Assembly (NCBI GenBank): GCA_965235115.1
Contig: OZ249436.1
Coordinates: 40,486,001-40,550,000, forward strand
Reading direction: 5' to 3'
Source of the DNA: Laetmonice hystrix
Taxonomy: Eukaryota
DNA: 64,000 nt
Position 1 is the first letter of the stretch, and the number at the start of each line of letters is the position of its first letter. A program made the translations under genes and the position numbers. Positions 3,264 through 64,000 of this stretch are shown one piece after another. The notes under the pieces were generated by a model, which saw nothing but the letters and a program-made list of their open reading frames with translations, was not told where the DNA came from and did not search any database.

Positions 3264-3267
3264 TTCT

Positions 3268-3313
<46 letters not shown>

Positions 3314-7519: not shown

Positions 7520-7554
<35 letters not shown>
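7520..7554. repeat. (CT)n microsatellite
   Basis: Read directly. Confidence 0.9.
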
Positions 7555-9451: not shown

Positions 9452-9533
9452 GACGAGGTGGCCGAGTGGTTAAGGCGATGGACTGCTAATCCATTGGGCT
9501 CTGCCCGCGTGGGTTCGAATCCAATCCTCGTCG
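9452..9533 (+). tRNA. trnS: tRNA-Ser(GCT), edge copy with T-stem mismatch (C63A) and no oligo-T terminator
   Basis: 82-nt type II cloverleaf; anticodon arm ATGGA-CTGCTAA-TCCAT; CCAAT instead of CCCAT. Confidence 0.8.
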
Positions 9534-10083
9534 GACAATTCTGGGCCAGAATTGGTCTCCTTATAGCTAATTTCCTATTCAATTCAGACACAAAATTCCA
9601 GTGATGGAGCCTGCCCTCTATTGGCAGAATACTGAAACGCCAGTTTGAAGAGGTGTCGGCCTTGGTGTTTTATATTCAACGTGGCCTCCAGGTTTAAAAC
9701 TTAAGATATCCTAGTACAACACGAGGACTAATCCATAGATTCTTTACATTTCCCCTCCCCAACAGGAATGGTATATTTATGCACAAAAGGGTCTTTTAAA
9801 TCCGTTTTAATGGCGTTGGCAGGTGAGGAAATGCAATTTCCTGGTAGCCTCTGCGTTTAGCATCTCTAGACCAGGAAGATTGGGGAGATTTGAAACCAGG
9901 ATGAAAGAGCAACAAAGATATCGAAAATAGAATTAATCGGTTTATTTGCATGATATTTACACATTCTATGTAGTACAAGGGACGAAGATCATGTTTTCCT
10001 TGACCGTTCGTATAATCTCAGCAACATATAGCACCAAAGTGTTCACAGGAAATAATTGTGTTCGCTTCACAATTCAGTAACAA

Positions 10084-11013
10084 CTATTCTCTGCAGATCC
10101 CGTCACACTGCACCAGTCCTTCAACATTGCAACTATGCCGCGGTCGCGTCAAGTCGTGCAAAGTAGAGAAGTTGGGACGTCTCTTGGTTGTGGGTTTGCA
10201 ATCGTCTGTGGCCTCGTCAGAATGCACAGTTCGTTGACAAGTCTCTGGCCTGTCTGTTTTCCTTTTTCTCTTCTCTCTCATGGAGCGTTCCCTTGCCATC
10301 CAGTTACGCACCCACTAAGAAGTTCGGCCCAGCTCCTTTGCAAGTCGGTCTGCCTCGTCGGGCGTAGGGTACGGATAGTCGACGTTTTCCCGGAACCACT
10401 TGCGCAGCACTGAGGAAGTTGGCGTCTCCGCTGTGGTCTGGGTCCGTCGCACTGGACGGAGTCGCTTGGGCCTGGCTGGCTTCCTACAGCAGATCCTGGT
10501 AGGTGGCGCTACTGGACACGAAGGCGGCATGGGTACGGGATAAGTCAGAGATACGGCCGACTTGTAACGGACAAAACTGCCGATGGCATGATCAAGTAGC
10601 ACGTGTCTCTCGTTGTCATAGAAGTGGTGGATGGTCGGCTGGAATCTCAGGTTGTCAGCGTGTCCGTACTCGGCTTGAAGGCGCAGCGTCTCGAGGGTCC
10701 TTGTCTCTTGTAAGTAGCACTCAACCAGCGTCTTCAACCATCTGGAGTTGTCTGTCTTCTGGAAACTGTCGACTTGGTGGAGGAACCCAACGTGCCGATG
10801 ATGTAAACTTGTACATCCTTGGTACTGCCTCTGGCATCGGCCCGCCCACAGGGACGTAGAGGGCGTCTTACTGGAGGGCTTCCAGGTACCGGCCTCCAGG
10901 CTGCTCCACTCTGGGTCGTCTGGAGACATGGGAGCGATGACAATCGGGGTGACCTCGACCAGGCTGGTGTCGACCGCCGGCCGACTTGTTACATTCCCAG
11001 GTCGGTAATCCAT
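10084..11013 (-). pseudogene. TALE homeobox ORF with nonsense codon (CAG>TAG at 10315-10317) just before helix 3
   Basis: ORF 10315..11013 stops at ELGRTS*; the rest of the frame continues to 10084. Confidence 0.8.
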
Positions 11014-11924
11014 GGTGTGGCAGCTGTGGTAAGTTGAAGGTAGCTTTGATGTTGATGTGACTGCAGCGATACCTTGGGCGGATCTGTGCTTGAGTCACTG
11101 AAACAGGATGCCTATATAGGCGTCTTCATCTTAAGGTGCGATTCAAGGTGAGACCAAAACCATCAAGCCTTCCTCTCGCATTTCTTTGAAGGGCAGTTCG
11201 ATTGACAACTTCAAGTAACACAACTTCTGGGATGAAAGAAAAAGGTGTTAGTTAGATAAAGTGTTTGTAACACATTTGAACGTAGGTGACGAAAGGCCAG
11301 GATTCATCTTATGACTTCAAAGATTCACACCTTGATTTTGTATGACTCATAGTTGAGCTTCAAAGGTTCACACATGGGCCGGGATGGTCCATGGTGTAGC
11401 AGCTGTGGTAAGTTGATGGTAGCTTTGATGGTGATTTGACTGCAGCGATACATTGGGCGGATCTGTGCTTGAGTCACTGACTAGGGTGCTTTCATAGGCG
11501 TCTTCATCTTAAGGTGCGATTGAAGGTGAGACCAAAACCATCAAGCCTTCCTCTCGCATTTCTTTGAAGTGCAGTTCGATTTACAACATTTACATAACTT
11601 CTGGGATAAAAGAAAAAGGTGTTGGTTGGATAAAGTGTTTGTAACACATTTGGACCTAACTGACGAAGGGGCAGGACCCGTCTTATGACTTCAAAGATTC
11701 ACACCTTGATTTTGTATGACTCACAGTTGAGCTTCACAGGTTCAGACATGGGCCGGGATGACTTGAGTCTCTATCACCTCTATCATACATTAAAGCATAA
11801 ATTGAGTATTGCCCCTAAACACGTCGTCTTTTAATAATATTGGTCATTGCAGTGTTTCCCTTCTTCCGTCCAGTTTTTATTTTATTTTTTGAAACATGGG
11901 AAGGGGGAAACTGAAACGTGGACA

Positions 11925-12006
11925 GACGAGGTGGCCGAGTGGTTAAGGCGATGGACTGCTAATCCATTGGGCTCTGCCCGCGTGGGTTCGAATCCCATCC
12001 TCGTCG
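11925..12006 (+). tRNA. trnS: tRNA-Ser(GCT)
   Basis: Canonical 82-nt sequence with intact A and B boxes, followed by T6. Confidence 0.95.
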
Positions 12007-12437
12007 AACTTTTTTGGGGGAAGAATTTGTCTCCTTATATAGCTAATTCCCTATTGGATTCAGGCACAAGATAGCAGTGATGGAGCCTGCCCTCTAATGG
12101 CAGAATACTGAAACGCCAGTTTGAAGAGGTGTCGGCCTTGGTGTTTTATATTCAACGTGGCCTCCAGGCTTAAAACTTAAGACGTCGTAGTACGAAACGA
12201 CGAGTAATCAATAGATTCTTTACATTTCCCCTCCCCCAACAGGAATGGTATATTTATGCACAAAAGGGTCTTTTAAATCCGTTTTAATGGCGTTGCCGGA
12301 TGAGGTGAGAGACGATCGGTAGCAGAAATGTAATTTCCTGGTAGTCTCTGCGTTTAGCATCTCTAGACCAGGAAGATTGGGGAATTTTGAAACCATGATA
12401 AAAGAGCAACAAACATATCGAAAATAGAATTAATCAG

Positions 12438-12443
12438 TTTATT
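12438..12443 (-). terminator. AATAAA polyadenylation signal of the homeobox gene (representative; repeated per unit)
   Basis: Plus-strand TTTATT about 140 nt past the stop, with a GT/T-rich element (TATGTTTGTTGCTCTTT) about 20 nt further on the minus strand. Confidence 0.6.
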
Positions 12444-12580
12444 TGCATGATATTTACACATTCTATGTAGTACAAGGGACGAAGATCATGTTTTCCTTGA
12501 CCGTTCGTATAATCTCAGCAACATATAGCACCAAAGTGTTCACAAGAAATAATTGTGTTCGCTTCAAAATTCAGTAACAA

Positions 12581-13513
12581 CTATTCTCTGCAGATCCCGT
12601 CAAACTGCACCAGTCCTTCAACTTTGCAACTCGGCCGCGGGCGCGTGAAGTCGTGCAACGCAGAGATGTTGGGACGTCTCTTGGTTGGGGGTTCGCAATC
12701 GTCTGTGGCCTCGTCAGAATGCACTGTTCGTTGACAAGTCTCTGGCCTGTTTGTTTTCCCTTTTCTCTTCTCTCTCATGGAGCGTTCCCTTGACATCCAG
12801 TTACGCACCCACTGAGAAGTTCGGCCCAGCTCCTTTGCAAGTCGGTCTGCCTCGTCGGACGTAGGGTACGGATAGTCGACGTTTTCCCGGAACCACTTGC
12901 GCAGCACTGAGGAAGTTGGCGTCTCCGCTGTGGTCTGGGTCCGTCGCACTGGACGGAGTCGCTTGGGCCTGGCTGTCTTCCTACAGCAGATCCTGGTAGG
13001 TGGCGCTACTGGACAGGAAGGCGGCATGGGTACGGGATAAGTCAGAGATACGGCCGACTTGTAACGGACAAAACTGCCGATGGCATGATCAAGTAGCACG
13101 TGTCTCTCGTTGTCATAGAAGTGGTGGATGGTCGGCTGGAATCTCAGGTTGTCAGCGTGTCCGTACTCGGCTTGAAGGCGCAGCAGCGTCTCGAGGGTCC
13201 TTGTCTCTTGTAAGTAGCACTCAACCAGCGTCTTCAACCATCTGGAGTTGTCTGTCTTCTGGAAACTGTCGACTTGGTGGAGGAACCCAACGTGCCGATG
13301 ATGTAAACTTGTACATCCTTGGTACTGCCTCTGGCATCGGCCCGCCCACAGGGACGTAGAGGGCGTCTTACTGGAGGGCTTCCAGGTACCGGCCTCCAGG
13401 CTGCTCCACTCTGGGTCGTCTGGAGACATGGGAGCGATGACAATCGGGGCGACCTCGACCAGGCTGGTGTCGACCGCCGGCCGACTTGTTACATTCCCAG
13501 GTCGGTAATCCAT
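12581..13513 (-). CDS. Divergent TALE-class homeodomain protein, 310 aa
   Basis: LRKWFRENVDYPYPT...LAKELGRTSQWVRNWMSRER aligns without gaps to TALE helices 1-3 with the PYP loop; Kozak ACCATGG. Confidence 0.85.
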   Translation of the reverse strand: MDYRPGNVTSRPAVDTSLVEVAPIVIAPMSPDDPEWSSLEAGTWKPSSKTPSTSLWAGRCQRQYQGCTSLHHRHVGFLHQVDSFQKTDNSRWLKTLVECYLQETRTLETLLRLQAEYGHADNLRFQPTIHHFYDNERHVLLDHAIGSFVRYKSAVSLTYPVPMPPSCPVAPPTRICCRKTARPKRLRPVRRTQTTAETPTSSVLRKWFRENVDYPYPTSDEADRLAKELGRTSQWVRNWMSRERSMREKRKGKTNRPETCQRTVHSDEATDDCEPPTKRRPNISALHDFTRPRPSCKVEGLVQFDGICRE

Positions 13514-14266
13514 GGTGTGGCAGCTGTGGTAAGTTGAAGGTAGCTTTGATGTTGATGTGACTGCAGCGATACCTTGGGCGGATCTGTGCTTGAGTCACTG
13601 AAACAGGATGCCTATATAGGCGTCTTCATCTTAAGGTGCGATTCAAGGTGAGACCAAAACCATCAAGCCTTCGTCTCGCATTTCTTTGAAGGGCAGTTCG
13701 ATTGACAACTTCAAGTAACACAACCTCTGGGATGAAAGAAAAAGGTGTTAGTTATAGATAAAGTGTTTGTAACACATTTGAACGTAGGTGACGAAAGGCC
13801 AGGATTCATCTTATGACTTCAAAGATTCACACCTTGATTTTGTATGACTCATAGTTGAGCTTCAAAGGTTCACACATGAGCCGGGATGGTCCATGGTGTA
13901 GCAGCTGTGGTAAGTTGATGGTAGCTTTGATGGTAATGTGACTGCAGCGATACATTGGGCGGATCTGTGCTTGAGCCACTAACCAGGGTGCCTACATAGG
14001 CATCTTCATCTTAAGGTGCGATTGAAGGTGAGACCAAAACCATCAAGCCTTCGTCTCGCATTTCTTTGAAGGGCAGTCCGATTGACAACTTGAAGTAACA
14101 CAACTTCTGGGATAAAAGAAAAAGGTGTTGGTTGGATAAAGTGTTTGTAACACATTTGGACCTAACTGACGAAGGGGCAGGACCCGTCTTATGACTTCAA
14201 AGATTCACACCTTGATTTTGTATGACTCACAGTTGAGCTTCACAGGTTCAGACATGGGCCGGGATG
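13510..14266. repeat. Internal ~380-bp tandem duplication of the homeobox start/promoter region (representative; in all long units, absent from short units)
   Basis: Block A 13510-13888 and block B 13891-14266 both begin CCATGGTGT(G/A)GCAGCTGTGGTAAG and end GCCGGGATG. Confidence 0.92.
13613..13618 (-). promoter_or_regulatory. Candidate TATA box (CCTATATAGG) about 100 bp upstream of the homeobox ATG (representative)
   Basis: Motif and position only; altered to TACATA in duplicated block B. Confidence 0.4.
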
Positions 14267-14430
14267 ACTTGAGTCTCTATCACCTCTATCATACATTAAA
14301 GCATAAATTGAGTATTGCCCCTAAACACGTCGTCTTTTAATAATATTGGTCATTGCAGTGTTTCCCTTCTTCCGTCCAGTTTTTATTTTATTTTTTGAAA
14401 CATGGGAAGGGGGAAACTGAAACGTGGACA

Positions 14431-14512
14431 GACGAGGTGGCCGAGTGGTTAAGGCGATGGACTGCTAATCCATTGGGCTCTGCCCGCGTGGGTTCGAATG
14501 CCATCCTCGTCG
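14431..14512 (+). tRNA. trnS: tRNA-Ser(GCT), B-box variant C61G
   Basis: GGTTCGAATGCC instead of GGTTCGAATCCC. Confidence 0.8.
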
Positions 14513-15086
14513 AACTTTTTTGGGGGAAGAATTTGTCTCCTTATATAGCTATTTCCCTATTGGATTCAGGCACAAGATAGCAGTAATGGAGCCTGCCCTC
14601 TATTGGCAGAATACTGAAACGCCAGTTTGAAGAGGTGTCGGCCTTGGTGTTTTATATTCAACGTGGCCTCCAGGCTTAAAACTTAAGACGTCGTAGTACG
14701 AAACGACGAGTAATCAATAGATTCTTTACATTTCCCCTCCCCCAACAGGAATGGTATATTTATGCACAAAAGGGTCTTTTAAATCCGTTTTAATGGCGTT
14801 GCCGGATGAGGTGAGAGACGATCGGTAGCAGAAATGTAATTTCCTGGTAGTCTCTGCGTTTAGCATCTCTAGACCAGGAAGATTGGGGAATTTTGAAACC
14901 ATGATGAAAGAGCAACAAACATATCGAAAATAGAATTAATCAGTTTATTTGCATGATATTTACACATTCTATGTAGTACAAGGGACGAAGATCATGTTTT
15001 CCTTGACCGTTCGTATAATCTCAGCAACATATAGCACCAAAGTGTTCACAAGAAATAATTGTGTTCGCTTCAAAATTCAGTAACAA

Positions 15087-16019
15087 CTATTCTCTGCAGA
15101 TCCCGTCAAACTGCACCAGTCCTTCAACTTTGCAACTCGGCCGCGGGCGCGTGAAGTCGTGCAACGCAGAGATGTTGGGACGTCTCTTGGTTGGGGGTTC
15201 GCAATCGTCTGTGGCCTCGTCAGAATGCACTGTTCGTTGACAAGTCTCTGGCCTGTTTGTTTTCCCTTTTCTCTTCTCTCTCATGGAGCGTTCCCTTGAC
15301 ATCCAGTTACGCACCCACTGAGAAGTTCGGCCCAGCTCCTTTGCAAGTCGGTCTGCCTCGTCGGACGTAGGGTACGGATAGTCGACGTTTTCCCGGAACC
15401 ACTTGCGCAGCACTGAGGAAGTTGGCGTCTCCGCTGTGGTCTGGGTCCGTCGCACTGGACGGAGTCGCTTGGGCCTGGCTGTCTTCCTACAGCAGATCCT
15501 GGTAGGTGGCGCTACTGGACAGGAAGGCGGCATGGGTACGGGATAAGTCAGAGATACGGCCGACTTGTAACGGACAAAACTGCCGATGGCATGATCAAGT
15601 AGCACGTGTCTCTCGTTGTCATAGAAGTGGTGGATGGTCGGCTGGAATCTCAGGTTGTCAGCGTGTCCGTACTCGGCTTGAAGGCGCAGCAGCGTCTCGA
15701 GGGTCCTTGTCTCTTGTAAGTAGCACTCAACCAGCGTCTTCAACCATCTGGAGTTGTCTGTCTTCTGGAAACTGTCGACTTGGTGGAGGAACCCAACGTG
15801 CCGATGATGTAAACTTGTACATCCTTGGTACTGCCTCTGGCATCGGCCCGCCCACAGGGACGTAGAGGGCGTCTTACTGGAGGGCTTCCAGGTACCGGCC
15901 TCCAGGCTGCTCCACTCTGGGTCGTCTGGAGACATGGGAGCGATGACAATCGGGGCGACCTCGACCAGGCTGGTGTCGACCGCCGGCCGACTTGTTACAT
16001 TCCCAGGTCGGTAATCCAT
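15087..16019 (-). CDS. Divergent TALE homeodomain protein, 310 aa
   Basis: Intact ORF, same protein as 12581..13513. Confidence 0.85.
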   Translation of the reverse strand: MDYRPGNVTSRPAVDTSLVEVAPIVIAPMSPDDPEWSSLEAGTWKPSSKTPSTSLWAGRCQRQYQGCTSLHHRHVGFLHQVDSFQKTDNSRWLKTLVECYLQETRTLETLLRLQAEYGHADNLRFQPTIHHFYDNERHVLLDHAIGSFVRYKSAVSLTYPVPMPPSCPVAPPTRICCRKTARPKRLRPVRRTQTTAETPTSSVLRKWFRENVDYPYPTSDEADRLAKELGRTSQWVRNWMSRERSMREKRKGKTNRPETCQRTVHSDEATDDCEPPTKRRPNISALHDFTRPRPSCKVEGLVQFDGICRE

Positions 16020-16936
16020 GGTGTGGCAGCTGTGGTAAGTTGATGGTAGCTTTGATGTTGATGTGACTGCAGCGATACCTTGGGCGGATCTGTGCTTGAG
16101 TCACTGAAACAGGATGCCTATATAGGCGTCTTCATCTTAAGGTGCGATTCAAGGTGAGACCAAAACCATCAAGCCTTCGTCTCGCATTTCTTTGAAGGGC
16201 AGTTCGATTGACAACTTCAAGTAACACAACCTCTGGGATGAAAGAAAAAGGTGTTAGTTATAGATAAAGTGTTTGTAACACATTTGAACGTAGGTGACGA
16301 AAGGCCAGGATTCATCTTATGACTTCAAAGATTCACACCTTGATTTTGTATGACTCATAGTTGAGCTTCAAAGGTTCACACATGAGCCGGGATGGTCCAT
16401 GGTGTAGCAGCTGTGGTAAGTTGATGGTAGCTTTGATGGTAATGTGACTGCAGCGATACATTGGGCGGATCTGTGCTTGAGCCACTAACCAGGGTGCCTA
16501 CATAGGCGTCTTCATCTTAAGGTGCGATTGAAGGTGAGACCAAAACCATCAAGCCTTCGTCTCGCATTTCTTTGAAGGGCAGTCCGATTGACAACTTGAA
16601 GTAACACAACTTCTGGGATAAAAGAAAAAGGTGTTGGTTGGATAAAGTGTTTGTAACACATTTGGACCTAACTGACGAAGGGGCAGGACCCGTCTTATGA
16701 CTTCAAAGATTCACACCTTGATTTTGTATGACTCACAGTTGAGCTTCACAGGTTCAGACATGGGCCGGGATGACTTGAGTCTCTATCACCTCTATCATAC
16801 ATTAAAGCATAAATTGAGTATTGCCCCTAAACACGTCGTCTTTTAATAATATTGGTCATTGCAGTGTTTCCCTTCTTCCGTCCAGTTTTTATTTTATTTT
16901 TTGAAAGATGGGAAGGGGGAAACTGAAACGTGGACA

Positions 16937-17018
16937 GACGAGGTGGCCGAGTGGTTAAGGCGATGGACTGCTAATCCATTGGGCTCTGCCCGCGTGGGTT
17001 CGAATCCCATCCTCGTCG
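16937..17018 (+). tRNA. trnS: tRNA-Ser(GCT)
   Basis: Canonical sequence followed by T6. Confidence 0.95.
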
Positions 17019-21946: not shown

Positions 21947-22028
21947 GACGAGGTGGCCGAGTGGTTAAGGCGATGGACTGCTAATCCATTGGGCTCTGCC
22001 CGCGTGGGTTCGAATGCCATCCTCGTCG
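21947..22028 (+). tRNA. trnS: tRNA-Ser(GCT), B-box variant C61G
   Basis: GGTTCGAATGCC. Confidence 0.8.
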
Positions 22029-36439: not shown

Positions 36440-36521
36440 GACGAGGTGGCCGAGTGGTTAAGGCGATGGACTGCTAATCCATTGGGCTCTGCCCGCGTGG
36501 GTTCGAATCCCATCCTCGTCG
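36440..36521 (+). tRNA. trnS: tRNA-Ser(GCT)
   Basis: Canonical sequence followed by an oligo-T run. Confidence 0.95.
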
Positions 36522-37095
36522 AACTTTTTTTGGGGAAGAATTTGTCTCCTTATATAGCTAATTCCCTATTGGATTCAGGCACAAGATAGCAGTGATGGAA
36601 CCTGCCCGCTATTGGCAGAATACTTAAACGCCAGTTTGAAGAGGTGTCGGCCTTGGTGTTTTATATTCAACGTGGCCTCCAGGCTTAAAACTTAAGACGT
36701 CGTAGTACGAAACGACGAGTAATCAATAGATTCTTTACATTTCCCCTCCCCCAACAGGAATGGTATATTTATGCACAAAAGGGTCTTTTAAATCCGTTTT
36801 AATGGCGTTGCCGGATGAGGTGAGAGACGATCGGTAGCAGAAATGTAATTTCCTGGTAGTCTCTGCGTTTAGCATCTCTAGACCAGGAAGATTGGGGAAT
36901 TTTGAAACCATGATGAAAGAGCAACAAACATATCGAAAATAGAATTAATCAGTTTATTTGCATGATATTTACACATTCTATGTAGTACAAGGGACGAAGA
37001 TCATGTTTTCCTTGACCGTTCGTATAATCTCAGCAACATATAGCACCAAAGTGTTCACAAGAAATAATTGTGTTCGCTTCACAATTCAGTAACAA

Positions 37096-38025
37096 CTATT
37101 CTCTGCAGATCCCGTCAAACTGCACCAGTCCTTCAACTTTGCAACTCGGCCGCGGGCGCGTGAAGTCGTGCAACGCAGAGATGTTGGGACGTCTCTTGGT
37201 TGGGGGTTCGCAATCGTCTGTGGCCTCGTCAGAATGCACTGTTCGTTGACAAGTCTCTGGCCTGTCTGTTTTCCCTTTTCTCTTCTCTCTCATGGAGCGT
37301 TCCCTTGACATCCAGTTACGCACCCACTGAGAAGTTCGGTCCAGCTCCTTTGCAAGTCGGTCTGCCTCGTCGGACGTAGGGTACGGATAGTCGACGTTTT
37401 CCCGGAACCACTTGCGCAGCACTGAGGAAGTTGGCGTCTCCGCTGTGGTCTGGGTCCGTCGCACTGGACGGAGTCGCTTGGGCCTGGCTGGCTTCCTACA
37501 GCAGATCCTGGTAGGTGGCGCTACTGGACAGGAAGGCGGCATGGGTACGGGATAAGTCAGAGATACGGCCGACTTGTAACGGACAAAACTGCCGATGGCA
37601 TGATCAAGTAGCACGTGTCTCTCGTTGTCATAGAAGTGGTGGATGGTCGGCTGGAATCTCAGGTTGTCAGCGTGTCCGTACTCGGCTTGAAGGCGCAGCG
37701 TCTCGAGGGTCCTTGTCTCTTGTAAGTAGCACTCAACCAGCGTCTTCAACCATCTGGAGTTGTCTGTCTTCTGGAAACTGTCGACTTGGTGGAGGAACCC
37801 AACGTGCCGATGATGTAAACTTGTACATCCTTGGTACTGCCTCTGGCATCGGCCCGCCCACAGGGACGTAGAGGGCGTCTTACTGGAGGGCTTCCAGGTA
37901 CCGGCCTCCAGGCTGCTCCACTCTGGGTCGTCTGGAGACATGGGAGCGATGACAATCGGGGCGACCTCGACCAGGCTGGTGTCGACCGCCGGCCGACTTG
38001 TTACATTCCCAGGTCGGTAATCCAT
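37096..38025 (-). CDS. Divergent TALE homeodomain protein, 309 aa
   Basis: Intact ORF. Confidence 0.85.
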   Translation of the reverse strand: MDYRPGNVTSRPAVDTSLVEVAPIVIAPMSPDDPEWSSLEAGTWKPSSKTPSTSLWAGRCQRQYQGCTSLHHRHVGFLHQVDSFQKTDNSRWLKTLVECYLQETRTLETLRLQAEYGHADNLRFQPTIHHFYDNERHVLLDHAIGSFVRYKSAVSLTYPVPMPPSCPVAPPTRICCRKPARPKRLRPVRRTQTTAETPTSSVLRKWFRENVDYPYPTSDEADRLAKELDRTSQWVRNWMSRERSMREKRKGKTDRPETCQRTVHSDEATDDCEPPTKRRPNISALHDFTRPRPSCKVEGLVQFDGICRE

Positions 38026-38942
38026 GGTGTGGCAGCTGTGGTAAGTTGAAGGTAGCTTTGATGGTGATGTGACTGCAGCGATACCTTGGGCGGATCTGTG
38101 CTTGAGTCACTGAAACAGGATGCCTATATAGGCGTCTTCATCTTAAGGTGCGATTCAAGGTGAGACCAAAACCATCAAGCCTTCGTCTCGCATTTCTTTG
38201 AAGGGCAGTTCGATTGACAACTTCAAGTAACACAACCTCTGGGATGAAAGAAAAAGGTGTTAGTTATAGATAAAGTGTTTGTAACACATTTGAACGTAGG
38301 TGACGAAAGGCCAGGATTCATCTTATGACTTCAAAGATTCACACCTTGATTTTGTATGACTCATAGTTGAGCTTCAAAGGTTCACACATGGGCCGGGATG
38401 GTCCATGGTGTAGCAGCTGTGGTAAGTTGATGGTAGCTTTGATGGTGATGTGACTGCAGCGATACATTGGGCGGATCTGTGCTTGAGCCACTAACCAGGG
38501 TGCCTACATAGGCGTCTTCATCTTAAGGTGCGATTGAAGGTGAGACCAAAACCATCAAGCCTTCGTCTCGCATTTCTTTGAAGGGCAGTCCGATTGACAA
38601 CTTGAAGTAACACAACTTCTGGGATAAAAGAAAAAGGTGTTGGTTGGATAAAGTGTTTGTAACACATTTGGACCTAACTGACGAAGGGGCAGGACCCGTC
38701 TTATGACTTCAAAGATTCACACCTTGATTTTGTATGACTCACAGTTGAGCTTCACAGGTTCAGACATGGGCCGGGATGACTTGAGTCTCTATCACCTCTA
38801 TCATACATTAAAGCATAAATTGAGTATTGCCCCTAAACACGTCGTCTTTTAATAATATTGGTCATTGCAGTGTTTCCCTTCTTCCGTCCAGTTTTTATTT
38901 TATTTTTTGAAACATGGGAAGGGGGAAACTGAAACGTGGACA

Positions 38943-46451: not shown

Positions 46452-46533
46452 GACGAGGTGGCCGAGTGGTTAAGGCGATGGACTGCTAATCCATTGGGCT
46501 CTGCCCGCGTGGGTTCGAATGCCATCCTCGTCG
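46452..46533 (+). tRNA. trnS: tRNA-Ser(GCT), B-box variant C61G
   Basis: GGTTCGAATGCC. Confidence 0.8.
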
Positions 46534-51457: not shown

Positions 51458-51539
51458 GACGAGGTGGCCGAGTGGTTAAGGCGATGGACTGCTAATCCAT
51501 TGGGCTCTGCCCGCGTGGGTTCGAATGCCATCCTCGTCG
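51458..51539 (+). tRNA. trnS: tRNA-Ser(GCT), B-box variant C61G
   Basis: GGTTCGAATGCC. Confidence 0.8.
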
Positions 51540-53960: not shown

Positions 53961-54042
53961 GACGAGGTGGCCGAGTGGTTAAGGCGATGGACTGCTAATC
54001 CATTGGGCTCTGCCCGCGTGGGTTCGAATCCCATCCTCGTCG
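53961..54042 (+). tRNA. trnS: tRNA-Ser(GCT)
   Basis: Canonical sequence followed by T6. Confidence 0.95.
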
Positions 54043-54616
54043 AACTTTTTTGGGGGAAGAATTTGTCTCCTTATATAGCTAATTCCCTATTGGATTCAGG
54101 CACAAGATAGCAGTGATGGAGCCTGCCCTCTATTGGCAGAATACTGAAACGCCAGTTTGAAGAGGTGTCGGCCTTGGTGTTTTATATTCAACGTGGCCTC
54201 CAGGCTTAAAACTTAAGACGTCGTAGTACGAAACGACGAGTAATCAATAGATTCTTTACATTTCCCCTCCCCCAACAGGAATGGTATATTTATGCACAAA
54301 AGGGTCTTTTAAATCCGTTTTAATGGCGTTGCCGGATGAGGTGAGAGACGATCGGTAGCAGAAATGTAATTTCCTGGTAGTCTCTGCGTTTAGCATCTCT
54401 AGACCAGGAACATTGGGGAATTTTGAAACCATGATGAAAAAGCAACAAACATATCGAAAATAGAATTAATCAGTTTATTTGCATGATATTTACACATTCT
54501 ATGTAGTACAAGGGACGAAGCTCATGTTTTCCTTGACCGTTCGTATAATCTCAGCAACATATAGCACCAAAGTGTTCACAAGAAATAATTGTGTTCGCTT
54601 CACAATTCAGTAACAA

Positions 54617-55546
54617 CTATTCTCTGCAGATCCCGTCAAACTGCACCAGTCCTTCAACTTTGCAACTCGGCCGCGGGCGCGTGAAGTCGTGCAACGCAGA
54701 GATGTTGGGACGTCTCTTGGTTGGGGGTTCGCAATCGTCTGTGGCCTCGTCAGAATGCACTGTTCGTTGACAAGTCTCTGGCCTGTCTGTTTTCCTTTTT
54801 CTCTTCTCTCTCATGGAGCGTTCCCTTGACATCCAGTTGTGCACCCACTGAGAAGTTCGGCCCAGCTCCTTTGCAAGTCGGTCTGCCTCGTCGGACGTAG
54901 GGTACGGATAGTCGACGTTTTCCCGGAACCACTTGCGCAGCACTGAGGAAGTTGGCGTCTCCGCTCTGGTCTGGGTCCGTCGCACTGGACGGAGTCGCTT
55001 GGGCCTGGCTGGCTTCCTATAGCAGATCCTGGTAGGTGGCGCTACTGGACACGAAGGTGGCATGGGTACGGGATAAGTCAGAGATACGGCCGACTTGTAA
55101 CGGACAAAACTGTCGATGGCATGATCAAGTAGCACGTGTCTCTCGTTGTCATAGAAGTGGTGGATGGTCGGCTGGAATCTGAGGTTGTCAGCGTGTCCGT
55201 ACTCGGCTTGAAGGCGCAGCGTCTCGAGGGTCCTTGTCTCTTGTAAGTAGCACTCAACCAGCGTCTCCAACCATCTGGAGTTGTTTGTCTTCTGGAAACT
55301 GTCGACCTGGTGGAGGAACCCAACGTGCCGATGATGTAAACTTGTACATCCTTGGAACTGCCTCTGGCATCGGCCCGCCCACAGGGACGTAGAGGGTGTG
55401 TTACGGGAGGGCTTCCAGGTACCGGCCTCCAGGCTGCTCCACTCTGGGTCGTCTGGAGACATGGGAGCGATGACAATCGGGGTGACCTCGACCAGGCTGG
55501 TGTCGACCGCCGGCCGACTTGTTACATTCCCAGGTCGGTAATCCAT
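54617..55546 (-). CDS. Divergent TALE homeodomain protein, 309 aa, long/short-type mosaic
   Basis: Intact ORF; C-terminus like the central units, N-terminus like the right-hand units. Confidence 0.83.
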   Translation of the reverse strand: MDYRPGNVTSRPAVDTSLVEVTPIVIAPMSPDDPEWSSLEAGTWKPSRNTPSTSLWAGRCQRQFQGCTSLHHRHVGFLHQVDSFQKTNNSRWLETLVECYLQETRTLETLRLQAEYGHADNLRFQPTIHHFYDNERHVLLDHAIDSFVRYKSAVSLTYPVPMPPSCPVAPPTRICYRKPARPKRLRPVRRTQTRAETPTSSVLRKWFRENVDYPYPTSDEADRLAKELGRTSQWVHNWMSRERSMREKRKRKTDRPETCQRTVHSDEATDDCEPPTKRRPNISALHDFTRPRPSCKVEGLVQFDGICRE

Positions 55547-56079
55547 GGTGTGGCAGCTGTGGTAAGTTGAAGGTAGCTTTGATGGTGATGTGACTGCAGC
55601 GATACCTTGGGCGGATCTGTGCTTGAGTCACTGAAACAGGATGCCTATATAGGCGTCTTCATCTTAAGGTGCGATTGAAGGTGAGACCAAAACCATCAAG
55701 CCTTCGTCTCGCATTTTTTTGAAAGGCAGTTCTATTTACAACTTCAAATAACACAGCTTCTGGGATGAAAGAAAAAGGTGTTAGTTAGATAAAGTGTTTG
55801 TAACACATTTGAACGTAGGTGACGAAAGGCCAGGATTCGTCTTATGACTTCAAAGAGTCACACCTTGATTTTGTATGACTCAAAGTTGAGCTTCAAAGGT
55901 TAACACATGGGCCGGGATTACTTGAGTCTCTATCACCTCTATCATACATTAAAGCATAAATTGTGTATTGCCCCTAAACACGTCGTCTTTTAATTGGTCA
56001 TTGCAGTGTTTCCCTTCTTCTATCTAGTTCTTATTTTATTTTTTTGAAACATAGGAAGGGGGAAACTGAAATGTGGACA

Positions 56080-56161
56080 GACGAGGTGGCCGAGTGGTTA
56101 AGGCGATGGACTGCTAATCCATTGGGCTCTGCCCGCGTGGGTTCGAATCCCATCCTCGTCG
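56080..56161 (+). tRNA. trnS: tRNA-Ser(GCT)
   Basis: Canonical sequence followed by T6. Confidence 0.95.
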
Positions 56162-56714
56162 AAGTTTTTTGGGAAGAATTTGTCTCCTTATAGCTAATTT
56201 CCTATTCAATTGAGACACAAGATAGCAGTGATGGAGCCAGCCCTCTAGTGGCAGAATACTGAAACGCCAGTTTGAAGAGGTGTCGGCCTTGGTGTTTTAT
56301 ATTCAACGTGGCCTCCATGCTTAAAACTTAAGACGTCGTAGTACAAAACGAGGAGTAATCCATAGATTCTTTACATTTCCCCTCGCCCAACAGGAATGGG
56401 ATATTTATGCAGAAAAGGGTCTTCAATCCGTTTTAATCGCGTTGCCGGGTGAGGTGAGAGACGATCGGTAGCAGAAATGTAATTTCCTGGTAGTCTCTAG
56501 ACCAGGAAGATTGGGGAGTTTTGAAACCATGATGAAAGAGCAACAAAGATATCGAAAATAGAATTAATCGGTTTATTTGCATGATATTTACACATTCTAA
56601 GTAGTACAAGGGACGAAGATCATGTTTTCCTTGACCGTTCGTATAATCTCAGCAACATATAGCACCAAAGTGTTCACAAGAAATAATTGTGTTCGCTTCA
56701 CAATTCAGTAACAA

Positions 56715-57644
56715 CTATTCTCTGCAGATCCCGTCAAACTGCACCAGTCCTTCAACATTGCAACTCGGCCGCGGTCGCGTCAAGTCGTGCAAAGTAGAGA
56801 AGTTGGGACGTCTCTTGGTTGTGGGTTTGCAATCGTCTGTGGCCTCGTCAGAATGCACAGTTCGTTGACAAGTCTCTGGCCTGTCTGTTTTCCTTTTTCT
56901 CTTCTCTCTCATGGAGCGTTCCCTTGCCATCCAGTTACGCACCCACTGAGAAGTTCGGCCCAGCTCCTTTGCAAGTCGGTCTGCCTCGTCGGACGTAGGG
57001 TACGGATAGTCGACGTTTTCCCGGAACCACTTGCGCAGCACTGAGGAAGTTGGCGTCTCCGCTCTGGTCTGGGTCCGTCGCACTGGACGGAGTCGCTTGG
57101 GCCTGGCTGGCTTCCTATAGCAGATCCTGGTAGGTGGCGCTACTGGACACGAAGGCGGCATGGGTACGGGATAAGTCAGAGATACGGCCGACTTGTAACG
57201 GACAAAACTGTCGATGGCATGATCAAGTAGCACGTGTCTCTCGTTGTCATAGAACTGGTGGATGGTCGGCTGGAATCTCAGGTTGTCAGCGTGTCCGTAC
57301 ATGGCTTGAAGGCGCAGCGTCTCGAGGGTCCTTGTCTCTTGTAAGTAGCACTCAACCAGCGTCTCCAACCATCTGGAGTTGTTTGTCTTCTGGAAACTGT
57401 CGACCTGGTGGAGGAACCCAACGTGCCGATGATGTAAACTTGTACATCCTTGGAACTGCCTCTGGCATCGGCCCGCCCACAGGGACGTAGAGGGTGTGTT
57501 ACGGGAGGGCTTCCAGGTACCGGCCTCCAGGCTGCTCCACTCTGGGTCGTCTGGAGACATGGGAGCGATGACAATCGGGGCGACCTCGACCAGGCTGGTG
57601 TCGACCGCCGGCCGACTTGTTACATTCCTAGGTCGGTAATCCAT
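56715..57644 (-). CDS. Divergent TALE homeodomain protein, 309 aa, short-unit type (WMAR)
   Basis: Intact ORF. Confidence 0.85.
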   Translation of the reverse strand: MDYRPRNVTSRPAVDTSLVEVAPIVIAPMSPDDPEWSSLEAGTWKPSRNTPSTSLWAGRCQRQFQGCTSLHHRHVGFLHQVDSFQKTNNSRWLETLVECYLQETRTLETLRLQAMYGHADNLRFQPTIHQFYDNERHVLLDHAIDSFVRYKSAVSLTYPVPMPPSCPVAPPTRICYRKPARPKRLRPVRRTQTRAETPTSSVLRKWFRENVDYPYPTSDEADRLAKELGRTSQWVRNWMARERSMREKRKRKTDRPETCQRTVHSDEATDDCKPTTKRRPNFSTLHDLTRPRPSCNVEGLVQFDGICRE

Positions 57645-58177
57645 GGTGTGGCAGCTGTGGTAAGTTGAAGGTAGCTTTGATGGTGATGTGACTGCAGCGA
57701 TACCTTGGGCGGATCTGTGCTTGAGTCACTGAAACAGGATGCCTATATAGGCGTCTTCATCTTAAGGTGCGATTGAAGGTGAGACCAAAACCATCAAGCC
57801 TTCGTCTCGCATTTTTTTGAAGGGCAGTTCTATTTACAACTTCAAATAACACAGCTTCTGGGATGAAAGAAAAAGGTGTTAGTTAGATAAAGTGTTTGTA
57901 ACACATTTGAGCGTAGGTGACGAAAGGCCAGGATTCGTCTTATGACTTCAAAGAGTCACACCTTGATTTTGTATGACTCATAGTTGAGCTTTGAAGGTTC
58001 ACACATGGGCCGGGATCACTTGAGTCTCTATCACCTCTATCATACATTAAAGCATAAATTGTGTATTGCCCCTAAACACGTCGTCTTTTAATTGGTCATT
58101 GCAGTGTTTCCCTTCTTCCATCTAGTTCTTATTTTATTTTTTTGAAACATAGGAAGGGGGAAAGTGAAATGTGGATA

Positions 58178-58259
58178 GACGAGGTGGCCGAGTGGTTAAG
58201 GCGATGGACTGCTAATCCATTGGTCTCTGCCCGCGTGGGTTCGAATCCCATCCTCGTCG
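58178..58259 (+). tRNA. trnS: tRNA-Ser(GCT), variable-arm variant
   Basis: TGGTCTCTGCCC instead of TGGGCTCTGCCC. Confidence 0.85.
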
Positions 58260-58812
58260 AAGTTTTTTGGGAAGAATTTGTCTCCTTATAGCTAATTTCC
58301 TATTCAATTGAGACACAAGATAGCAGTGATGGAGCCAGCCCTCTAGTGGCAGAATACTGAAACGCCAGTTTGAAGAGGTGTCGGCCTTGGTGTTTTATAT
58401 TCAACGTGGCCTCCATGCTTAAAACTTAAGACGTCGTAGTACAAAACGAGGAGTAATCCATAGATTCTTTACATTTCCCCTCGCCCAACAGGAATGGGAT
58501 ATTTATGCAGAAAAGGGTCTTCAATCCGTTTTAATCGCGTTGCCGGGTGAGGTGAGAGACGATCGGTAGCAGAAATGTAATTTCCTGGTAGTCTCTAGAC
58601 CAGGAAGATTGGGGAGTTTTGAAACCATGATGAAAGAGCAACAAAGATATCGAAAATAGAATTAATCGGTTTATTTGCATGATATTTACACATTCTAAGT
58701 AGTACAAGGGACGAAGATAATGTTTTCCTTGACCGTTCGTATAATCTCAGCAACATATAGCACCAAAGTGTTCACAAGAAATAATTGTGTTCGCTTCACA
58801 ATTCAGTAACAA

Positions 58813-59741
58813 CTATTCTCTGCAGATCCCGTCAAACTGCACCAGTCCTTCAACATTGCAACTCGGCCGCGGTCGCGTCAAGTCGTGCAAAGTAGAGAAG
58901 TTGGGACGTCTCTTGGTTGTGGGTTTGCAATCGTCTGTGGCCTCGTCAGAATGCACAGTTCGTTGACAAGTCTCTGGCCTGTCTGTTTTCCTTTTTCTCT
59001 TCTCTCTCATGGAGCGTTCCCTTGCCATCCAGTTACGCACCCACTGAGAAGTTCGGCCCAGCTCCTTTGCAAGTCGGTCTGCCTCGTCGGACGTAGGGTA
59101 CGGATAGTCGACGTTTTCCCGGAACCACTTGCGCAGCACTGAGGAAGTTGGCGTCTCCGCTCTGGTCTGGGTCCGTCGCACTGGACGGAGTCGCTTGGGC
59201 CTGGCTAGCTTCCTATAGCAGATCCTGGTAGGTGGCGCTACTGGACACGAAGGCGGCATGGGTACGGGATAAGTCAGAGATACGGCCGACTTGTAACGGA
59301 CAAAACTGTCGATGGCATGATCAAGTAGCACGTGTCTCTCGTTGTCATAGAACTGGTGGATGGTCGGCTGGAATCTCAGGTTGTCAGCGTGTCCGTACTC
59401 GGCTTGAAGGCGCAGCGTCTCGAGGGTCCTTGTCTCTTGTAAGTAGCACTCAACCACGTCTCCAACCATCTGGAGTTGTTTGTCTTCTGGAAACTGTCGA
59501 CCTGGTGGAGGAACCCAACGTGCCGATGATGTAAACTTGTACATCCTTGGAACTGCCTCTGGCATCAGCCGGCCCGCAGGGACGTAGAGGGTGTGTTACG
59601 GGAGGGCTTCCAGGTACCGGCCTCCAGGCTGCTCCACTCTGGGTCGTCTGGAGACATGGGAGCGATGACAATCGGGGCGACCTCGACCAGGCTGGTGTCG
59701 ACCGCCGGCCGACTTGTTACATTCCTAGGTCGGTAATCCAT
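58813..59741 (-). pseudogene. TALE homeobox gene with nonsense at codon 59 and a 1-bp deletion; a 250-aa ORF (58813..59565) retains the homeodomain
   Basis: CGA>TGA at 59565-59567; 1-bp deletion at 59456/59457. Confidence 0.7.
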
Positions 59742-60274
59742 GGTGTGGCAGCTGTGGTAAGTTGAAGGTAGCTTTGATGGTGATGTGACTGCAGCGATAC
59801 CTTGGGCGGATCTGTGCTTGAGTCACTGAAACAGGATGCCTATATAGGCGTCTTCATCTTAAGGTGCGATTGAAGGTGAGACCAAAACCATCAAGCCTTC
59901 GTCTCGCATTTTTTTGAAGGGCAGTTCTATTTACAACTTCAAATAACACAGCTTCTGGGATGAAAGAAAAAGGTGTTAGTTAAATAAAGTGTTTGTAACA
60001 CATTTGAACGTAGGTGACGAAAGGCCAGGATTCGTCTTATGACTTCAAAGAGTCACACCTTGATTTGGTATGACTCATAGTTGAGCTTCAAAGGTTCACA
60101 CATGGGCCGGGATGACTTGAGTCTCTATCACCTCTATCATACATTAAAGCATAAATTGTGTATTGCCCCTAAACACGTCGTCTTTTAATTGGTCATTGCA
60201 GTGTTTCCCTTCTTCCATCTAGTTCTTATTTTATTTTTTTGAAACATAGAAAGGGAGAAAGTGAAATGTGGACA

Positions 60275-60356
60275 GACGAGGTGGCCGAGTGGTTAAGGCG
60301 ATGGACTGCTAATCCATTGGGCTCTGCCCGCGTGGGTTCGAATCCCATCCTCGTCG
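60275..60356 (+). tRNA. trnS: tRNA-Ser(GCT)
   Basis: Canonical sequence followed by T6. Confidence 0.95.
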
Positions 60357-60909
60357 AAGTTTTTTGGGAAGAATTTGTCTCCTTATAGCTAATTTCCTAT
60401 TCAATTGAGACACAAGATAGCAGTGATGGAGCCAGCCCTCTAGTAGCAGAATACTGAAACGCCAGTTTGAAGAGGTGTCGGCCTTGGTGTTTTATATTCA
60501 ACGTGGCCTCCATGCTTAAAACTTAAGACGTCGTAGTACAAAACGAGGATTAATCCATAGATTCTTTACATTTCCCCTCCCCCAACAGGAATGGGATATT
60601 TATGCAGAAAAGGGTCTTCAATCCGTTTTAATCGCGTTGCCGGGTGAGGTGAGAGACGATCGGTAGCAGAAATGTAATTTCCTGGTAGTCTCTAGACCAG
60701 GAAGATTGGGGAGTTTTGAAACCATGATGAAAGAGCAACAAAGATATCGAAAATAGAATTAATCGGTTTATTTGCATGATATTTACACATTCTAAGTAGT
60801 ACAAGGGACGAAGATCATGTTTTCCTTGACCGTTCGTATAATCTCAGCAACATATAGCACCAAAGTGTTCACAAGAAATAATTGTGTTCGCTTCACAATT
60901 CAGTAACAA

Positions 60910-61838
60910 CTATTCTCTGCAGATCCCGTCAAACTGCACCAGTCCTTCAACATTGCAACTCGGCCGCGGTCGCGTCAAGTCGTGCAAAGTAGAGAAGTTG
61001 GGACGTCTCTTGGTTGTGGGTTTGCAATCGTCTGTGGCCTCGTCAGAATGCACAGTTCGTTGACAAGTCTCTGGCCTGTCTGTTTTCCTTTTTCTCTTCT
61101 CTCTCATGGAGCGTTCCCTTGCCATCCAGTTACGCACCCACTGAGAAGTTCGGCCCAGCTCCTTTGCAAGTCGGTCTGCCTCGTCGGACGTAGGGTACGG
61201 ATAGTCGACGTTTTCCCGGAACCACTTGCGCAGCACTGAGGAAGTTGGCGTCTCCGCTCTGGTCTGGGTCCGTCGCACTGGACGGAGTCGCTTGGGCCTG
61301 GCTGGCTTCCTATAGCAGATCCTGGTAGGTGGCGCTACTGGACACGAAGGCGGCATGGGTACGGGATAAGTCAGAGATACGGCCGACTTGTAACGGACAA
61401 AACTGTCGATGGAATGATCAAGTAGCACGTGTCTCTCGTTGTCATAGAACTGGTGGATGGTCGGCTGGAATCTCAGGTTGTCAGCGTGTCCGTACTCGGC
61501 TTGAAGGCGCAGCGTCTCGAGGGTCCTTGTCTCTTGTAAGTAGCACTCAACCACGTCTCCAACCATCTGGAGTTGTTTGTCTTCTGGAAACTGTCGACCT
61601 GGTGGAGGAACCCAACGTGCCGATGATGTAAACTTGTACATCCTTGGAACTGCCTCTGGCATCAGCCGGCCCGCAGGGACGTAGAGGGTGTGTTACGGGA
61701 GGGCTTCCAGGTACCGGCCTCCAGGCTGCTCCACTCTGGGTCGTCTGGAGACATGGGAGCTATGACAATCGGGGCGACCTCGACCAGGCTGGTGTCGACC
61801 GCCGGCCGACTTGTTACATTCCTAGGTCGGTAATCCAT
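60910..61838 (-). pseudogene. TALE homeobox gene with the same two lesions; 250-aa ORF 60910..61662
   Basis: TGA at 61662-61664; deletion at 61553/61554; also a 9-bp deletion beside the TATA-like motif. Confidence 0.7.
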
Positions 61839-62362
61839 GGTGTGGCAGCTGTGGTAAGTTGAAGGTAGCTTTGATGGTGATGTGACTGCAGCGATACCTT
61901 GGGCGGATCTGTGCTTGAGTCACTGAAACAGGATGCCTATATAGGCTTAAGGTGCGATTGAAGGTGAGACCAAAACCATCAAGCCTTCGTCTCGCATTTT
62001 TTTGAAGGGCAGTTCTATTTACAACTTCAAATAACACAGCTTCTGGGATGAAAGAAAAAGGTGTTAGTTAAATAAAGTGTTTGTAACACATTTGAACGTA
62101 GGTGACGAAAGGCCAGGATTCGTCTTATGACTTCAAAGAGTCACACCTTGATTTTGTATGACTCATAGTTGAGCTTCAAAGGTTCACACATGGGCCGGGA
62201 TGACTTGAGTCTCTATCACCTCTATCATACATTAAAGCATAAATTGTGTATTGCCCCTAAACACGTCGTCTTTTAATTGGTCATTGCAGTGTTTCCCTTC
62301 TTCCATCTAGTTCTTATTTTATTTTTTTGAAACATAGAAAGGGGGAAAGTGAAATGTGGACA

Positions 62363-62444
62363 GACAAGGTGGCCGAGTGGTTAAGGCGATGGACTGCTAA
62401 TCCATTGGGCTCTGCCCGCGTGGGTTCGAATCCCATCCTCGTCG
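62363..62444 (+). tRNA. trnS: tRNA-Ser(GCT), acceptor-stem variant G4A
   Basis: GACAAGG instead of GACGAGG. Confidence 0.8.
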
Positions 62445-62997
62445 AAGTTTTTTGGGAAGAATTTGTCTCCTTATAGCTAATTTCCTATTCAATTGAGACA
62501 CAAGATAGCAGTGATGGAGCCAGCCCTCTAGTGGCAGAATACTGAAACGCCAGTTTGAAGAGGTGTCGGCCTTGGTGTTTTATATTCAACGTGGCCTCCA
62601 TGCTTAAAACTTAAGACGTCGTAGTACAAAACGAGGATTAATCCATAGATTCTTTACATTTCCCCTCCCCCAACAGGAATGGGATATTTATGCAGAAAAG
62701 GGTCTTCAATCCGTTTTAATCGCGTTGCCGGGTGAGGTGAGAGACGATCGGTAGCAGAAATGTAATTTCCTGGTAGTCTCTAGACCAGGAAGATTGGGGA
62801 GTTTTGAAACCATGATAAAAGAGCAACAAAGATATCGAAAATAGAATTAATCGGTTTATTTGCATGATATTTACACATTCTAAGTAGTACAAGGGACGAA
62901 GATCATGTTTTCCTTGACCGTTCGTATAATCTCAGCAACATATAGCACCAAAGTGTTCACAAGAAATAATTGTGTTCGCTTCACAATTCAGTAACAA

Positions 62998-63926
62998 CTA
63001 TTCTCTGCAGATCCCGTCAAACTGCACCAGTCCTTCAACATTGCAACTCGGCCGCGGTCGCGTCAAGTCGTGCAAAGTAGAGAAGTTGGGACGTCTCTTG
63101 GTTGTGGGTTTGCAATCGTCTGTGGCCTCGTCAGAATGCACAGTTCGTTGACAAGTCTCTGGCCTGTCTGTTTTCCTTTTTCTCTTCTCTCTCATGGAGC
63201 GTTCCCTTGCCATCCAGTTACGCACCCACTGAGAAGTTCGGCCCAGCTCCTTTGCAAGTCGGTCTGCCTCGTCGGACGTAGGGTACGGATAGTCGACGTT
63301 TTCCCGGAACCACTTGCGCAGCACTGAGGAAGTTGGCGTCTCCGCTCTGGTCTGGGTCCGTCGCACTGGACGGAGTCGCTTGGGCCTGGCTGGCTTCCTA
63401 TAGCAGATCCTGGTAGGTGGCGCTACTGGACACGAAGGCGGCATGGGTACGGGATAAGTCAGAGATACGGCCGACTTGTAACGGACAAAACTGTCGATGG
63501 AATGATCAAGTAGCACGTGTCTCTCGTTGTCATAGAACTGGTGGATGGTCGGCTGGAATCTCAGGTTGTCAGCGTGTCCGTACTCGGCTTGAAGGCGCAG
63601 CGTCTCGAGGGTCCTTGTCTCTTGTAAGTAGCACTCAACCACGTCTCCAACCATCTGGAGTTGTTTGTCTTCTGGAAACTGTCGACCTGGTGGAGGAACC
63701 CAACGTGCCGATGATGTAAACTTGTACATCCTTGGAACTGCCTCTGGCATCAGCCGGCCCGCAGGGACGTAGAGGGTGTGTTACGGGAGGGCTTCCAGGT
63801 ACCGGCCTCCAGGCTGCTCCACTCTGGGTCGTCTGGAGACATGGGAGCTATGACAATCGGGGCGACCTCGACCAGGCTGGTGTCGACCGCCGGCCGACTT
63901 GTTACATTCCTAGGTCGGTAATCCAT
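62998..63926 (-). pseudogene. TALE homeobox gene with the same two lesions; 250-aa ORF 62998..63750
   Basis: TGA at 63750-63752; deletion at 63641/63642. Confidence 0.7.
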
Positions 63927-64000
63927 GGTGTGGCAGCTGTGGTAAGTTGAAGGTAGCTTTGATGGTGATGTGACTGCAGCGATACCTTGGGCGGATCTGT

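Follow-up and report, generated by a model that had tools for sequence, protein, structure and literature searches.

The 64,000-nucleotide stretch of Laetmonice hystrix DNA analyzed here (contig OZ249436.1, called the window below) contains at least 23 units, U1–U23, arranged head to tail in a tandem array that begins at position 9452 and extends to the end of the window. Each unit carries a tRNA-Ser(GCT) gene on the plus strand and an intronless TALE homeobox open reading frame (ORF) on the minus strand. The best explanation, which we hold with moderate confidence, is that a young tandem amplification beside the gene FBXL16 was seeded by the tRNA and took the TALE gene along as a neutrally drifting passenger. 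The copy number is probably not maintained for the sake of a canonical DNA-binding transcription factor, because the coding sequence drifts like neutral DNA and the homeodomain has lost the residues N51 and R55 from its third helix.

Architecture of the array and its units

ARAGORN finds 23 tRNA genes on the plus strand between positions 9451 and 62444. These calls agree with the Rfam, ORF, and Pfam results, and together they bear out the proposal of a preliminary description of this DNA that one tRNA and one intronless homeobox ORF recur in every one of at least 23 units (9452–64000). When unit borders are set at each tRNA start, which is the split used for all lengths and identities given here, the spacing is 2502–2506 bp for U2–U9 and U12–U18, 2482 bp for U10, 1996 bp for U11, 2474 bp for U1, and 2088–2119 bp for U19–U22. 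U23 is cut at the window end, and thus the array runs on beyond the right edge. The window contains no N characters.

Comparison of the units reveals two subfamilies. Type A units (U2–U18, positions 11925–53960) are ~2.5 kb long and share 99.3%–99.9% identity, and type B units (U19–U23, positions 53961–64000) are ~2.1 kb long and lack a ~380-bp promoter duplication, with mutual identities of 99.2%–99.8% for U20–U23. Identity between the two types is ~96.3%, and both U19 and the edge unit U1 (9452–11924) are intermediate. The latter has diverged, with a change in the T stem of its tRNA, no T-run terminator, and a premature stop in its ORF. Other units carry deletions of their own: U10 has lost 21 bp and a single nucleotide of its tRNA, and a 507-bp deletion in U11 takes out the 3′ part of the ORF, including the homeobox. 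The units have a GC content of 48% and a CpG observed/expected ratio of 0.82, and the ORF makes up 37% of the unit length.

The very high identity between units could also be produced if a few real copies had been inflated to 23 by long-read misassembly, but this seems very improbable. More than 180 sites vary among the units, mostly by substitution rather than homopolymer noise, and the patterns common to several units follow their position in the array. Copy-specific substitutions, position-clustered diagnostic variants, and distinct structural variants (two length classes, a mosaic unit, and the unit-specific 21- and 507-bp deletions) all argue against so simple an account.

The distribution of shared variants is informative in its own right. 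These variants split U2–U8 from U10–U18 and interleave inside the groups (U3/U6, U5/U7, and U4/U8). The mosaic unit, U19 (53961–56079), is A-like from the tRNA to the ORF stop (1.2% versus 4.5% divergence) and B-like upstream, where the 378-bp promoter duplication is missing, and its ORF has about half of the B-type amino acid changes. Interleaved variants and a mosaic unit fit the outcome that repeated unequal exchange and conversion would be expected to leave in a real array.

The tRNA component is canonical in most units. Only the U10 copy (31962), whose 1-nucleotide deletion falls in the anticodon arm, is not called Ser(GCT) by ARAGORN (22 of 23), and the Rfam tRNA model matches all 23 copies at 51–66 bits (gathering score 29). 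Fourteen of them have the unmutated form, with a score of 66.3 bits. In U12, which serves as the representative unit (36440–38942), the tRNA identified by both programs occupies positions 36440–36521 of the plus strand. Its internal A box, TGGCCGAGTGG, and B box, GGTTCGAATCC, can be read from the sequence, and a T7 run that begins 3 nucleotides past its 3′ end (36525–36531, plus strand) is the predicted RNA polymerase III (Pol III) terminator. A T6–T7 run follows the tRNA in 22 of the 23 units and is missing in the edge unit U1. With a canonical tRNA, its anticodon, A and B boxes, a downstream T run, and head-to-tail repetition, the locus has the attributes of a tandem tRNA array.

Four nonadjacent type A units, U3, U6, U16, and U18 (tRNAs at 14431–14512, 21947–22028, 46452–46533, and 51458–51539), have in common a C-to-G change in the B box and T arm that lowers the Rfam score from 66.3 to 57.6 bits. 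Such sharing implies that a probably impaired tRNA has spread through block duplication or gene conversion. The possibility that the tRNA was co-amplified to decode the serine codons of the neighboring ORF was also considered and ruled out, in that AGY codons account for a 0.36 share of serine codons in the ORF and a 0.35 share in FBXL16.

The preliminary description had also counted 18 intact and near-identical homeobox ORFs, and this number is confirmed. Intact minus-strand ORFs of 309 or 310 amino acids (930 or 933 nucleotides with the stop codon) are present in U2–U10 and U12–U20, and the ORFs of the other five units (U1, U11, and U21–U23) are disrupted, those of U21–U23 by a common stop codon and a 1-bp frameshift. 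The representative ORF of U12 (37096–38025, minus strand, 309 amino acids) has a 3′ end that converges on the 3′ end of the tRNA. A TATATA box within GACGCCTATATAGGCA is located 105 nucleotides upstream of the ATG (38125–38130, minus strand), and an AATAAA polyadenylation signal is located 138 nucleotides past the stop codon (36953–36958, minus strand). The 16-mer TATA motif occurs without mismatch in 21 of the 23 units, the exceptions being U22 and U23, the second of which is cut before that region. An ATG in the Kozak context CACACCATGG is present in all 23, and every unit holds at least one AATAAA. In U12, the promoter, 5′ untranslated region, and ATG lie within the ~380-bp tandem duplication (38021–38778, minus strand), whose copies at 38021–38400 and 38402–38778 are 91%–96% alike. 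This duplication is found only in U1 and type A units, most of the latter reading TATGTA in the distal promoter copy, and a single copy is present in type B.

Each unit is predicted from these signals to be a complete Pol III gene combined with a complete, short, intronless RNA polymerase II (Pol II) gene. The array is in this respect a mixed Pol II/Pol III tandem repeat, with one Pol III gene and one protein-coding gene per unit. The idea that the unit is a transposon or another mobile element was examined and set aside. A repeat scan detected no terminal repeats, the sole internal repeat being the ~380-bp promoter duplication, and the TALE ORF, the only ORF of the unit that was scanned against Pfam, matched homeobox families only. 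The remaining ORFs in the unit are short.

The TALE protein and the divergence of its copies

The ORF matches the Pfam family Homeobox_KN (PF05920) at 32–37 bits, compared with a cut-off of 24, and it aligns without gaps to PKNOX1, Exd, and PBX1 across the PYP loop, which places it in the TALE class. The U12 protein has a helical N-terminal domain (residues ~73–155) followed by the TALE homeodomain (residues ~190–252). A structure predicted by AlphaFold2 from a shallow alignment has a mean predicted local distance difference test score (pLDDT) of 53 and includes two ordered modules, a three-helix domain (73–155) and the homeodomain (198–253), with block-mean pLDDT values mostly from the high 70s to the high 80s. 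The predicted homeodomain superposes on those of Exd and Meis at 0.6–0.7 Å. When the predicted structure was used as a Foldseek query, only homeodomains were matched and nothing was returned for the N-terminal domain.

An unusual feature of the protein is helix 3, whose residues W-M-S-R-E-R-S-M stand opposite WFINAR in PKNOX1 and WFGNKR in Exd. Two of the canonical helix-3 contacts, W48 and R53, are kept, and the other two are replaced (N51 by R and R55 by M). Both replacements are invariant across the 18 intact copies, and N51 is kept in all 11 aligned relatives as well as in PKNOX1 and Exd. This asparagine is the near-universal adenine contact of homeodomains, and without it DNA binding is normally crippled. 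By the standards of established homeodomain biochemistry, a recognition helix with R51 and M55 would therefore be expected to be crippled for DNA binding.

Searches for related proteins returned distant matches. The closest relatives recovered by an exhaustive HMMER search are ~30% identical, and most matches cover only the homeodomain. A subset of the matches, including P0002, P0004, and P0058, also spans residues ~20–170, and the N-terminal helical domain is conserved with these three proteins and with others. All three come from one ENA assembly (ERZ26222911), where each is encoded by one uninterrupted ORF and the loci are dispersed; a second TALE ORF is located 4 kb from one of them. A named annelid member of the family is CAD5118137.1 of Dimorphilus gyrociliatus. 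A word-index protein search with the ORF gave no match, and its profile version matched only P0058 and P0278. Likewise, an exact look-up of four ORF variants and the FBXL16 exon in a public protein collection gave no match. The best-scoring library matches, P0001 (locus L001) and P0003, are multi-homeodomain TALE proteins with seven and four Homeobox_KN repeats, respectively. P0003 and P0010 carry the EukProt label Cyclotella meneghiniana; this source is unexpected for proteins related to an animal-type TALE and may reflect contamination.

Several spiralian TALE clades possess a conserved region of ~87–90 residues, called PADRE, upstream of the homeodomain (PMC5322547, PMC6118893, PMC8524836). 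The N-terminal domain described here fits a PADRE-like assignment in size and position, a comparison made with published descriptions. On present sequence evidence, the protein is a member of an intronless spiralian TALE family with a helical domain of ~85 residues N-terminal of the homeodomain.

Differences among the copies provide a measure of constraint. The 18 intact ORFs contain nine synonymous and 31 nonsynonymous variant alleles, corresponding to a ratio of nonsynonymous to synonymous substitution rates (dN/dS, or omega) of ~1.06. Omega values of 0.5 and 0.3 can be rejected (P = 0.028 and P = 0.0003, respectively). The changes spare no domain, with six nonsynonymous changes and one synonymous change in the homeodomain and seven and two, respectively, in the N-terminal domain. 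Comparison of U12 (type A) with U20 (type B) gives six synonymous and 21 nonsynonymous differences and an omega of 1.07. Furthermore, two of 53 substitution events created a stop codon, compared with 2.1 expected under neutrality. The presence of 18 open ORFs is not evidence of selection, because neutrality predicts as much at 0.5% divergence. This pattern shows a coding sequence that has apparently been free of protein-level constraint since the array formed, and a dN/dS value near 1 is one half of the pair of results, the other being a lack of expression at every stage, that the preliminary description had named as counting against its proposal.

A different reading of the altered helix is that the gene has been neofunctionalized to make a TALE-derived protein that no longer binds DNA and instead binds a partner protein or RNA, for example as a TALE/PADRE decoy under diversifying selection. 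The conserved N-terminal domain, the invariance of N51R and R55M in the intact copies, and an omega that is not below 1 are all compatible with such a role, which we nevertheless consider distinctly improbable. Nonsynonymous changes are evenly spread and do not avoid the N-terminal domain, and omega is not above 1. Two of the related proteins from ENA assembly ERZ26222911, P0058 and P0278, keep the N-terminal helical domain and have no homeodomain that Pfam can recognize. This suggests that the domain may exist, and perhaps function, without a homeobox.

Origin and maintenance of the array

Homology between U1 and the other units starts at exactly the first base of the tRNA (position 9452), and the sequence to the left is unique. 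This coincidence suggests that unequal exchange was seeded at tRNA copies. In the scenario that we favor, a single PADRE-like TALE gene would have been located between or beside copies of tRNA-Ser(GCT), and a unit composed of the tRNA and the TALE gene would then have arisen at the tRNA through unequal exchange or template switching. Additional rounds of unequal exchange, along with gene conversion, would have amplified the unit, partially homogenized the copies, and given rise to the two subfamilies. The TALE coding sequence has since drifted like neutral DNA, with a recognition helix that lacks N51 and R55. The TALE gene would thus be a co-amplified passenger that is possibly still transcribed, in an array that either is neutral or is kept for its supply of tRNA.

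Association with a tRNA does not extend to the relatives examined. These were sampled at 43 loci totaling 190 kb of metagenome-derived eukaryotic contigs and at three loci in ERZ26222911. No tRNA genes were found in the 43 loci, which leads us to reject the tRNA link as a trait of the family, and no regular multicopy array was found in them, the closest approach being a few loci with two homeoboxes ~3 kb apart. The three ERZ26222911 loci have no neighboring tRNA and no evident regular array. Therefore, the tRNA-homeobox unit that the preliminary description had proposed to seek in related genomes was encountered in neither set. Among the loci with paired homeoboxes, L020/L021 (5974–9166) and L026 (5965–9439) each have two TALE homeoboxes on the same strand, which might be tandem duplicates or genes with two homeodomains, and no tRNA is nearby.

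The same loci bear on how the ORF came to be intronless. In many of the 43, the N-terminal domain and the homeodomain are encoded in one continuous frame, and intronlessness is therefore a family trait and no sign of retroposition in the array. Also, no poly(A) remnant is present past the AATAAA signal. A retrogene origin is not supported.

Several observations weigh against the passenger explanation. Young embryonic homeobox families evolve fast, and selection on each copy is weak in a redundant array, such that an omega near 1 among the copies is no proof of a useless protein. A well-formed promoter, a Kozak ATG, and a polyadenylation signal are kept across the units, and 18 of 23 ORFs remain open. 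Per-site variation is 5.7% in the ORF and ~8.7% in noncoding DNA, individual parts of which range from 4.8% to 12%. Small indels are underrepresented in the ORF (2 of 19, P = 0.011), which is weak evidence of selection because homopolymer runs are 4.5–7 times rarer in the ORF than elsewhere. The case for the tRNA as the selected element has its own difficulty. Types A and B have no fixed differences at the 82 tRNA positions, compared with 3.5%–5% in the flanks and 2.9% in the ORF. However, the target is just 82 bp, and nine of the 23 copies have stem, loop, or box changes that are mostly copy specific. The evidence that the tRNA is a selected element is thin.

Some of these same features are expected if the array serves gene dosage, as the preliminary description had proposed in invoking an amplified embryonic transcription factor. 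Under such an arrangement, many short, intronless, TATA-driven TALE copies would deliver a burst of protein during the short cycles of early cleavage, and the tRNAs would be accidental passengers or boundary elements. Dux and Obox are multicopy early genes that could be viewed as analogs. Nearly every unit has the full complement of promoter, start codon, ORF, and polyadenylation signal, and the protein is predicted to fold into two modules, one of them closely matching known TALE homeodomains. SPILE A/C and B genes, often present as near-identical tandem copies, are expressed zygotically from the 4–16-cell stage (PMC8524836), and in the oyster, expression of novel TALE genes extends from the egg to the blastula (PMC5322547). 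Despite these parallels, the proposal is not supported by the sequence comparisons and seems unlikely, if still worth serious consideration. Omega is near 1 even in the homeodomain, nonsense changes arise at the neutral rate, and three of the four type B ORFs have been disrupted. Likewise, every intact copy has lost N51 and R55 when all aligned relatives keep N51, and the intactness of the 18 open ORFs would be expected anyway at so low a divergence.

A more elaborate version of this idea would make the array the spiralian counterpart of Dux/D4Z4 or Obox. The PADRE-TALE genes would be expressed in a burst at zygotic activation in the 4–16-cell embryo, the tRNAs would act as TFIIIC-bound boundaries that keep the units accessible, and N51R and R55M would represent a new binding specificity or a new partner. 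We regard this as rather improbable.

The unique DNA to the left of the array contains two features that are relevant to its history. A solo 5′ fragment of the same tRNA-Ser(GCT), 68 of the 82 nucleotides at 97% identity and without unit flanks, is present 5.4 kb from the array (3978–4045, plus strand; matched more weakly by Rfam at 3978–4038). This fragment may be what remains of an older tRNA copy or may derive from a rearrangement. Between it and the array is a large, single-copy exon of FBXL16 (5867–7282, minus strand) that encodes an F-box and leucine-rich repeats. Transcription of FBXL16 is directed away from the array, whose first unit begins 2.2 kb past the 5′ end of the exon. The best named relative of the exon is from Capitella teleta (79%), and other annelids, molluscs, and a brachiopod come next. 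On this ranking, the exon marks the host as a spiralian and probably an annelid. The closest relatives are 86%–88% identical in amino acid sequence and ~75%–77% identical in nucleotide sequence within the exon, with no similarity in noncoding DNA. One locus carrying an FBXL16 relative (L002) has no tRNA or TALE gene in the 3.8 kb upstream, although it is too distant to be decisive. Within the exon, a (CCT)23 microsatellite (7107–7175) encodes a run of ~24 glycines in the N-terminal part of the protein, and the conserved F-box and repeat region starts at about residue 185. Additional microsatellites of the (TC)n and (CT)n types are located in the single-copy flank at 3265–3310 and 7520–7554.

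Significance and relation to known systems

The importance of the array depends in part on whether its TALE copies are expressed. If they are, the locus would be an invertebrate homeobox macrosatellite and a natural test of whether early zygotic bursts during spiral cleavage benefit from copy number, intronlessness, and Pol III neighbors. Silent copies would instead make it a clean, dated case of a tRNA gene that seeds an amplification and sweeps along a developmental gene, and would illustrate the decay of a homeobox gene within an array that evolves in concert. In both cases, arrays such as this one can inflate the number of "expanded TALE genes" counted in spiralian genomes.

The ingredients of the array are known separately, as tRNA arrays, tandem spiralian TALE duplicates, homeobox macrosatellites, and mixed Pol II/Pol III units, but their combination was not found described. 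The novelty claimed earlier for the combined unit holds to the extent that literature searches yielded no description of a tRNA-plus-homeobox unit. However, tandem TALE copies (PMC8524836) and units that join Pol III and protein-coding genes (PMC13525598) have both been published.

Near-identical tandem TALE copies have been reported in other spiralians, with eight in Lottia and seven in a chiton (PMC8524836), and genus-specific clades can be larger, such as the 16 copies in Helobdella (PMC6118893). The genes in the array resemble these SPILE/PADRE duplicates in having a single TALE homeodomain, a length of ~300 amino acids, a conserved upstream region of ~85–90 residues, and rapid evolution. 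Unlike these duplicates, the array is strictly periodic at 2.1–2.5 kb, has at least 23 copies, includes a tRNA in every unit, and encodes homeodomains that have lost N51 and R55.

The D4Z4/DUX4-like architecture ascribed to the array in the preliminary description is apt only in outline. As in D4Z4 and the mouse Dux array, kilobase-sized units are arranged head to tail in tens of copies, and each has one intronless homeobox ORF. The details differ. DUX4 has two PRD-class homeodomains, whereas the protein here has a single homeodomain of the TALE class. The D4Z4 unit is a GC-rich CpG island, and no CpG island is present in the array. D4Z4 has a polyadenylation site only beyond its last unit, in contrast to the TATA box and AATAAA signal that accompany the ORF in each unit here. 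The array also differs from D4Z4 in that a Pol III gene is part of every unit, no sign of a retrogene was detected, and the relatives are intronless as well.

Tandem tRNA arrays provide another point of comparison. Like the Tyr-Tyr-Ser array of Arabidopsis chromosome 1 (PMC2886086), the array has canonical tRNAs, is consistent with unequal crossing-over, and mixes intact with mutated copies, but its unit adds a complete protein-coding gene that occupies more than a third of the length. A parallel in composition is with the 5S rRNA/histone units of Artemia and Mytilus (PMC13525598), which likewise join a small Pol III gene to protein-coding genes in one tandem repeat. Those units pair high-demand housekeeping genes under strong purifying selection, whereas the protein-coding partner of the tRNA in this array is a fast-drifting gene of the developmental type.

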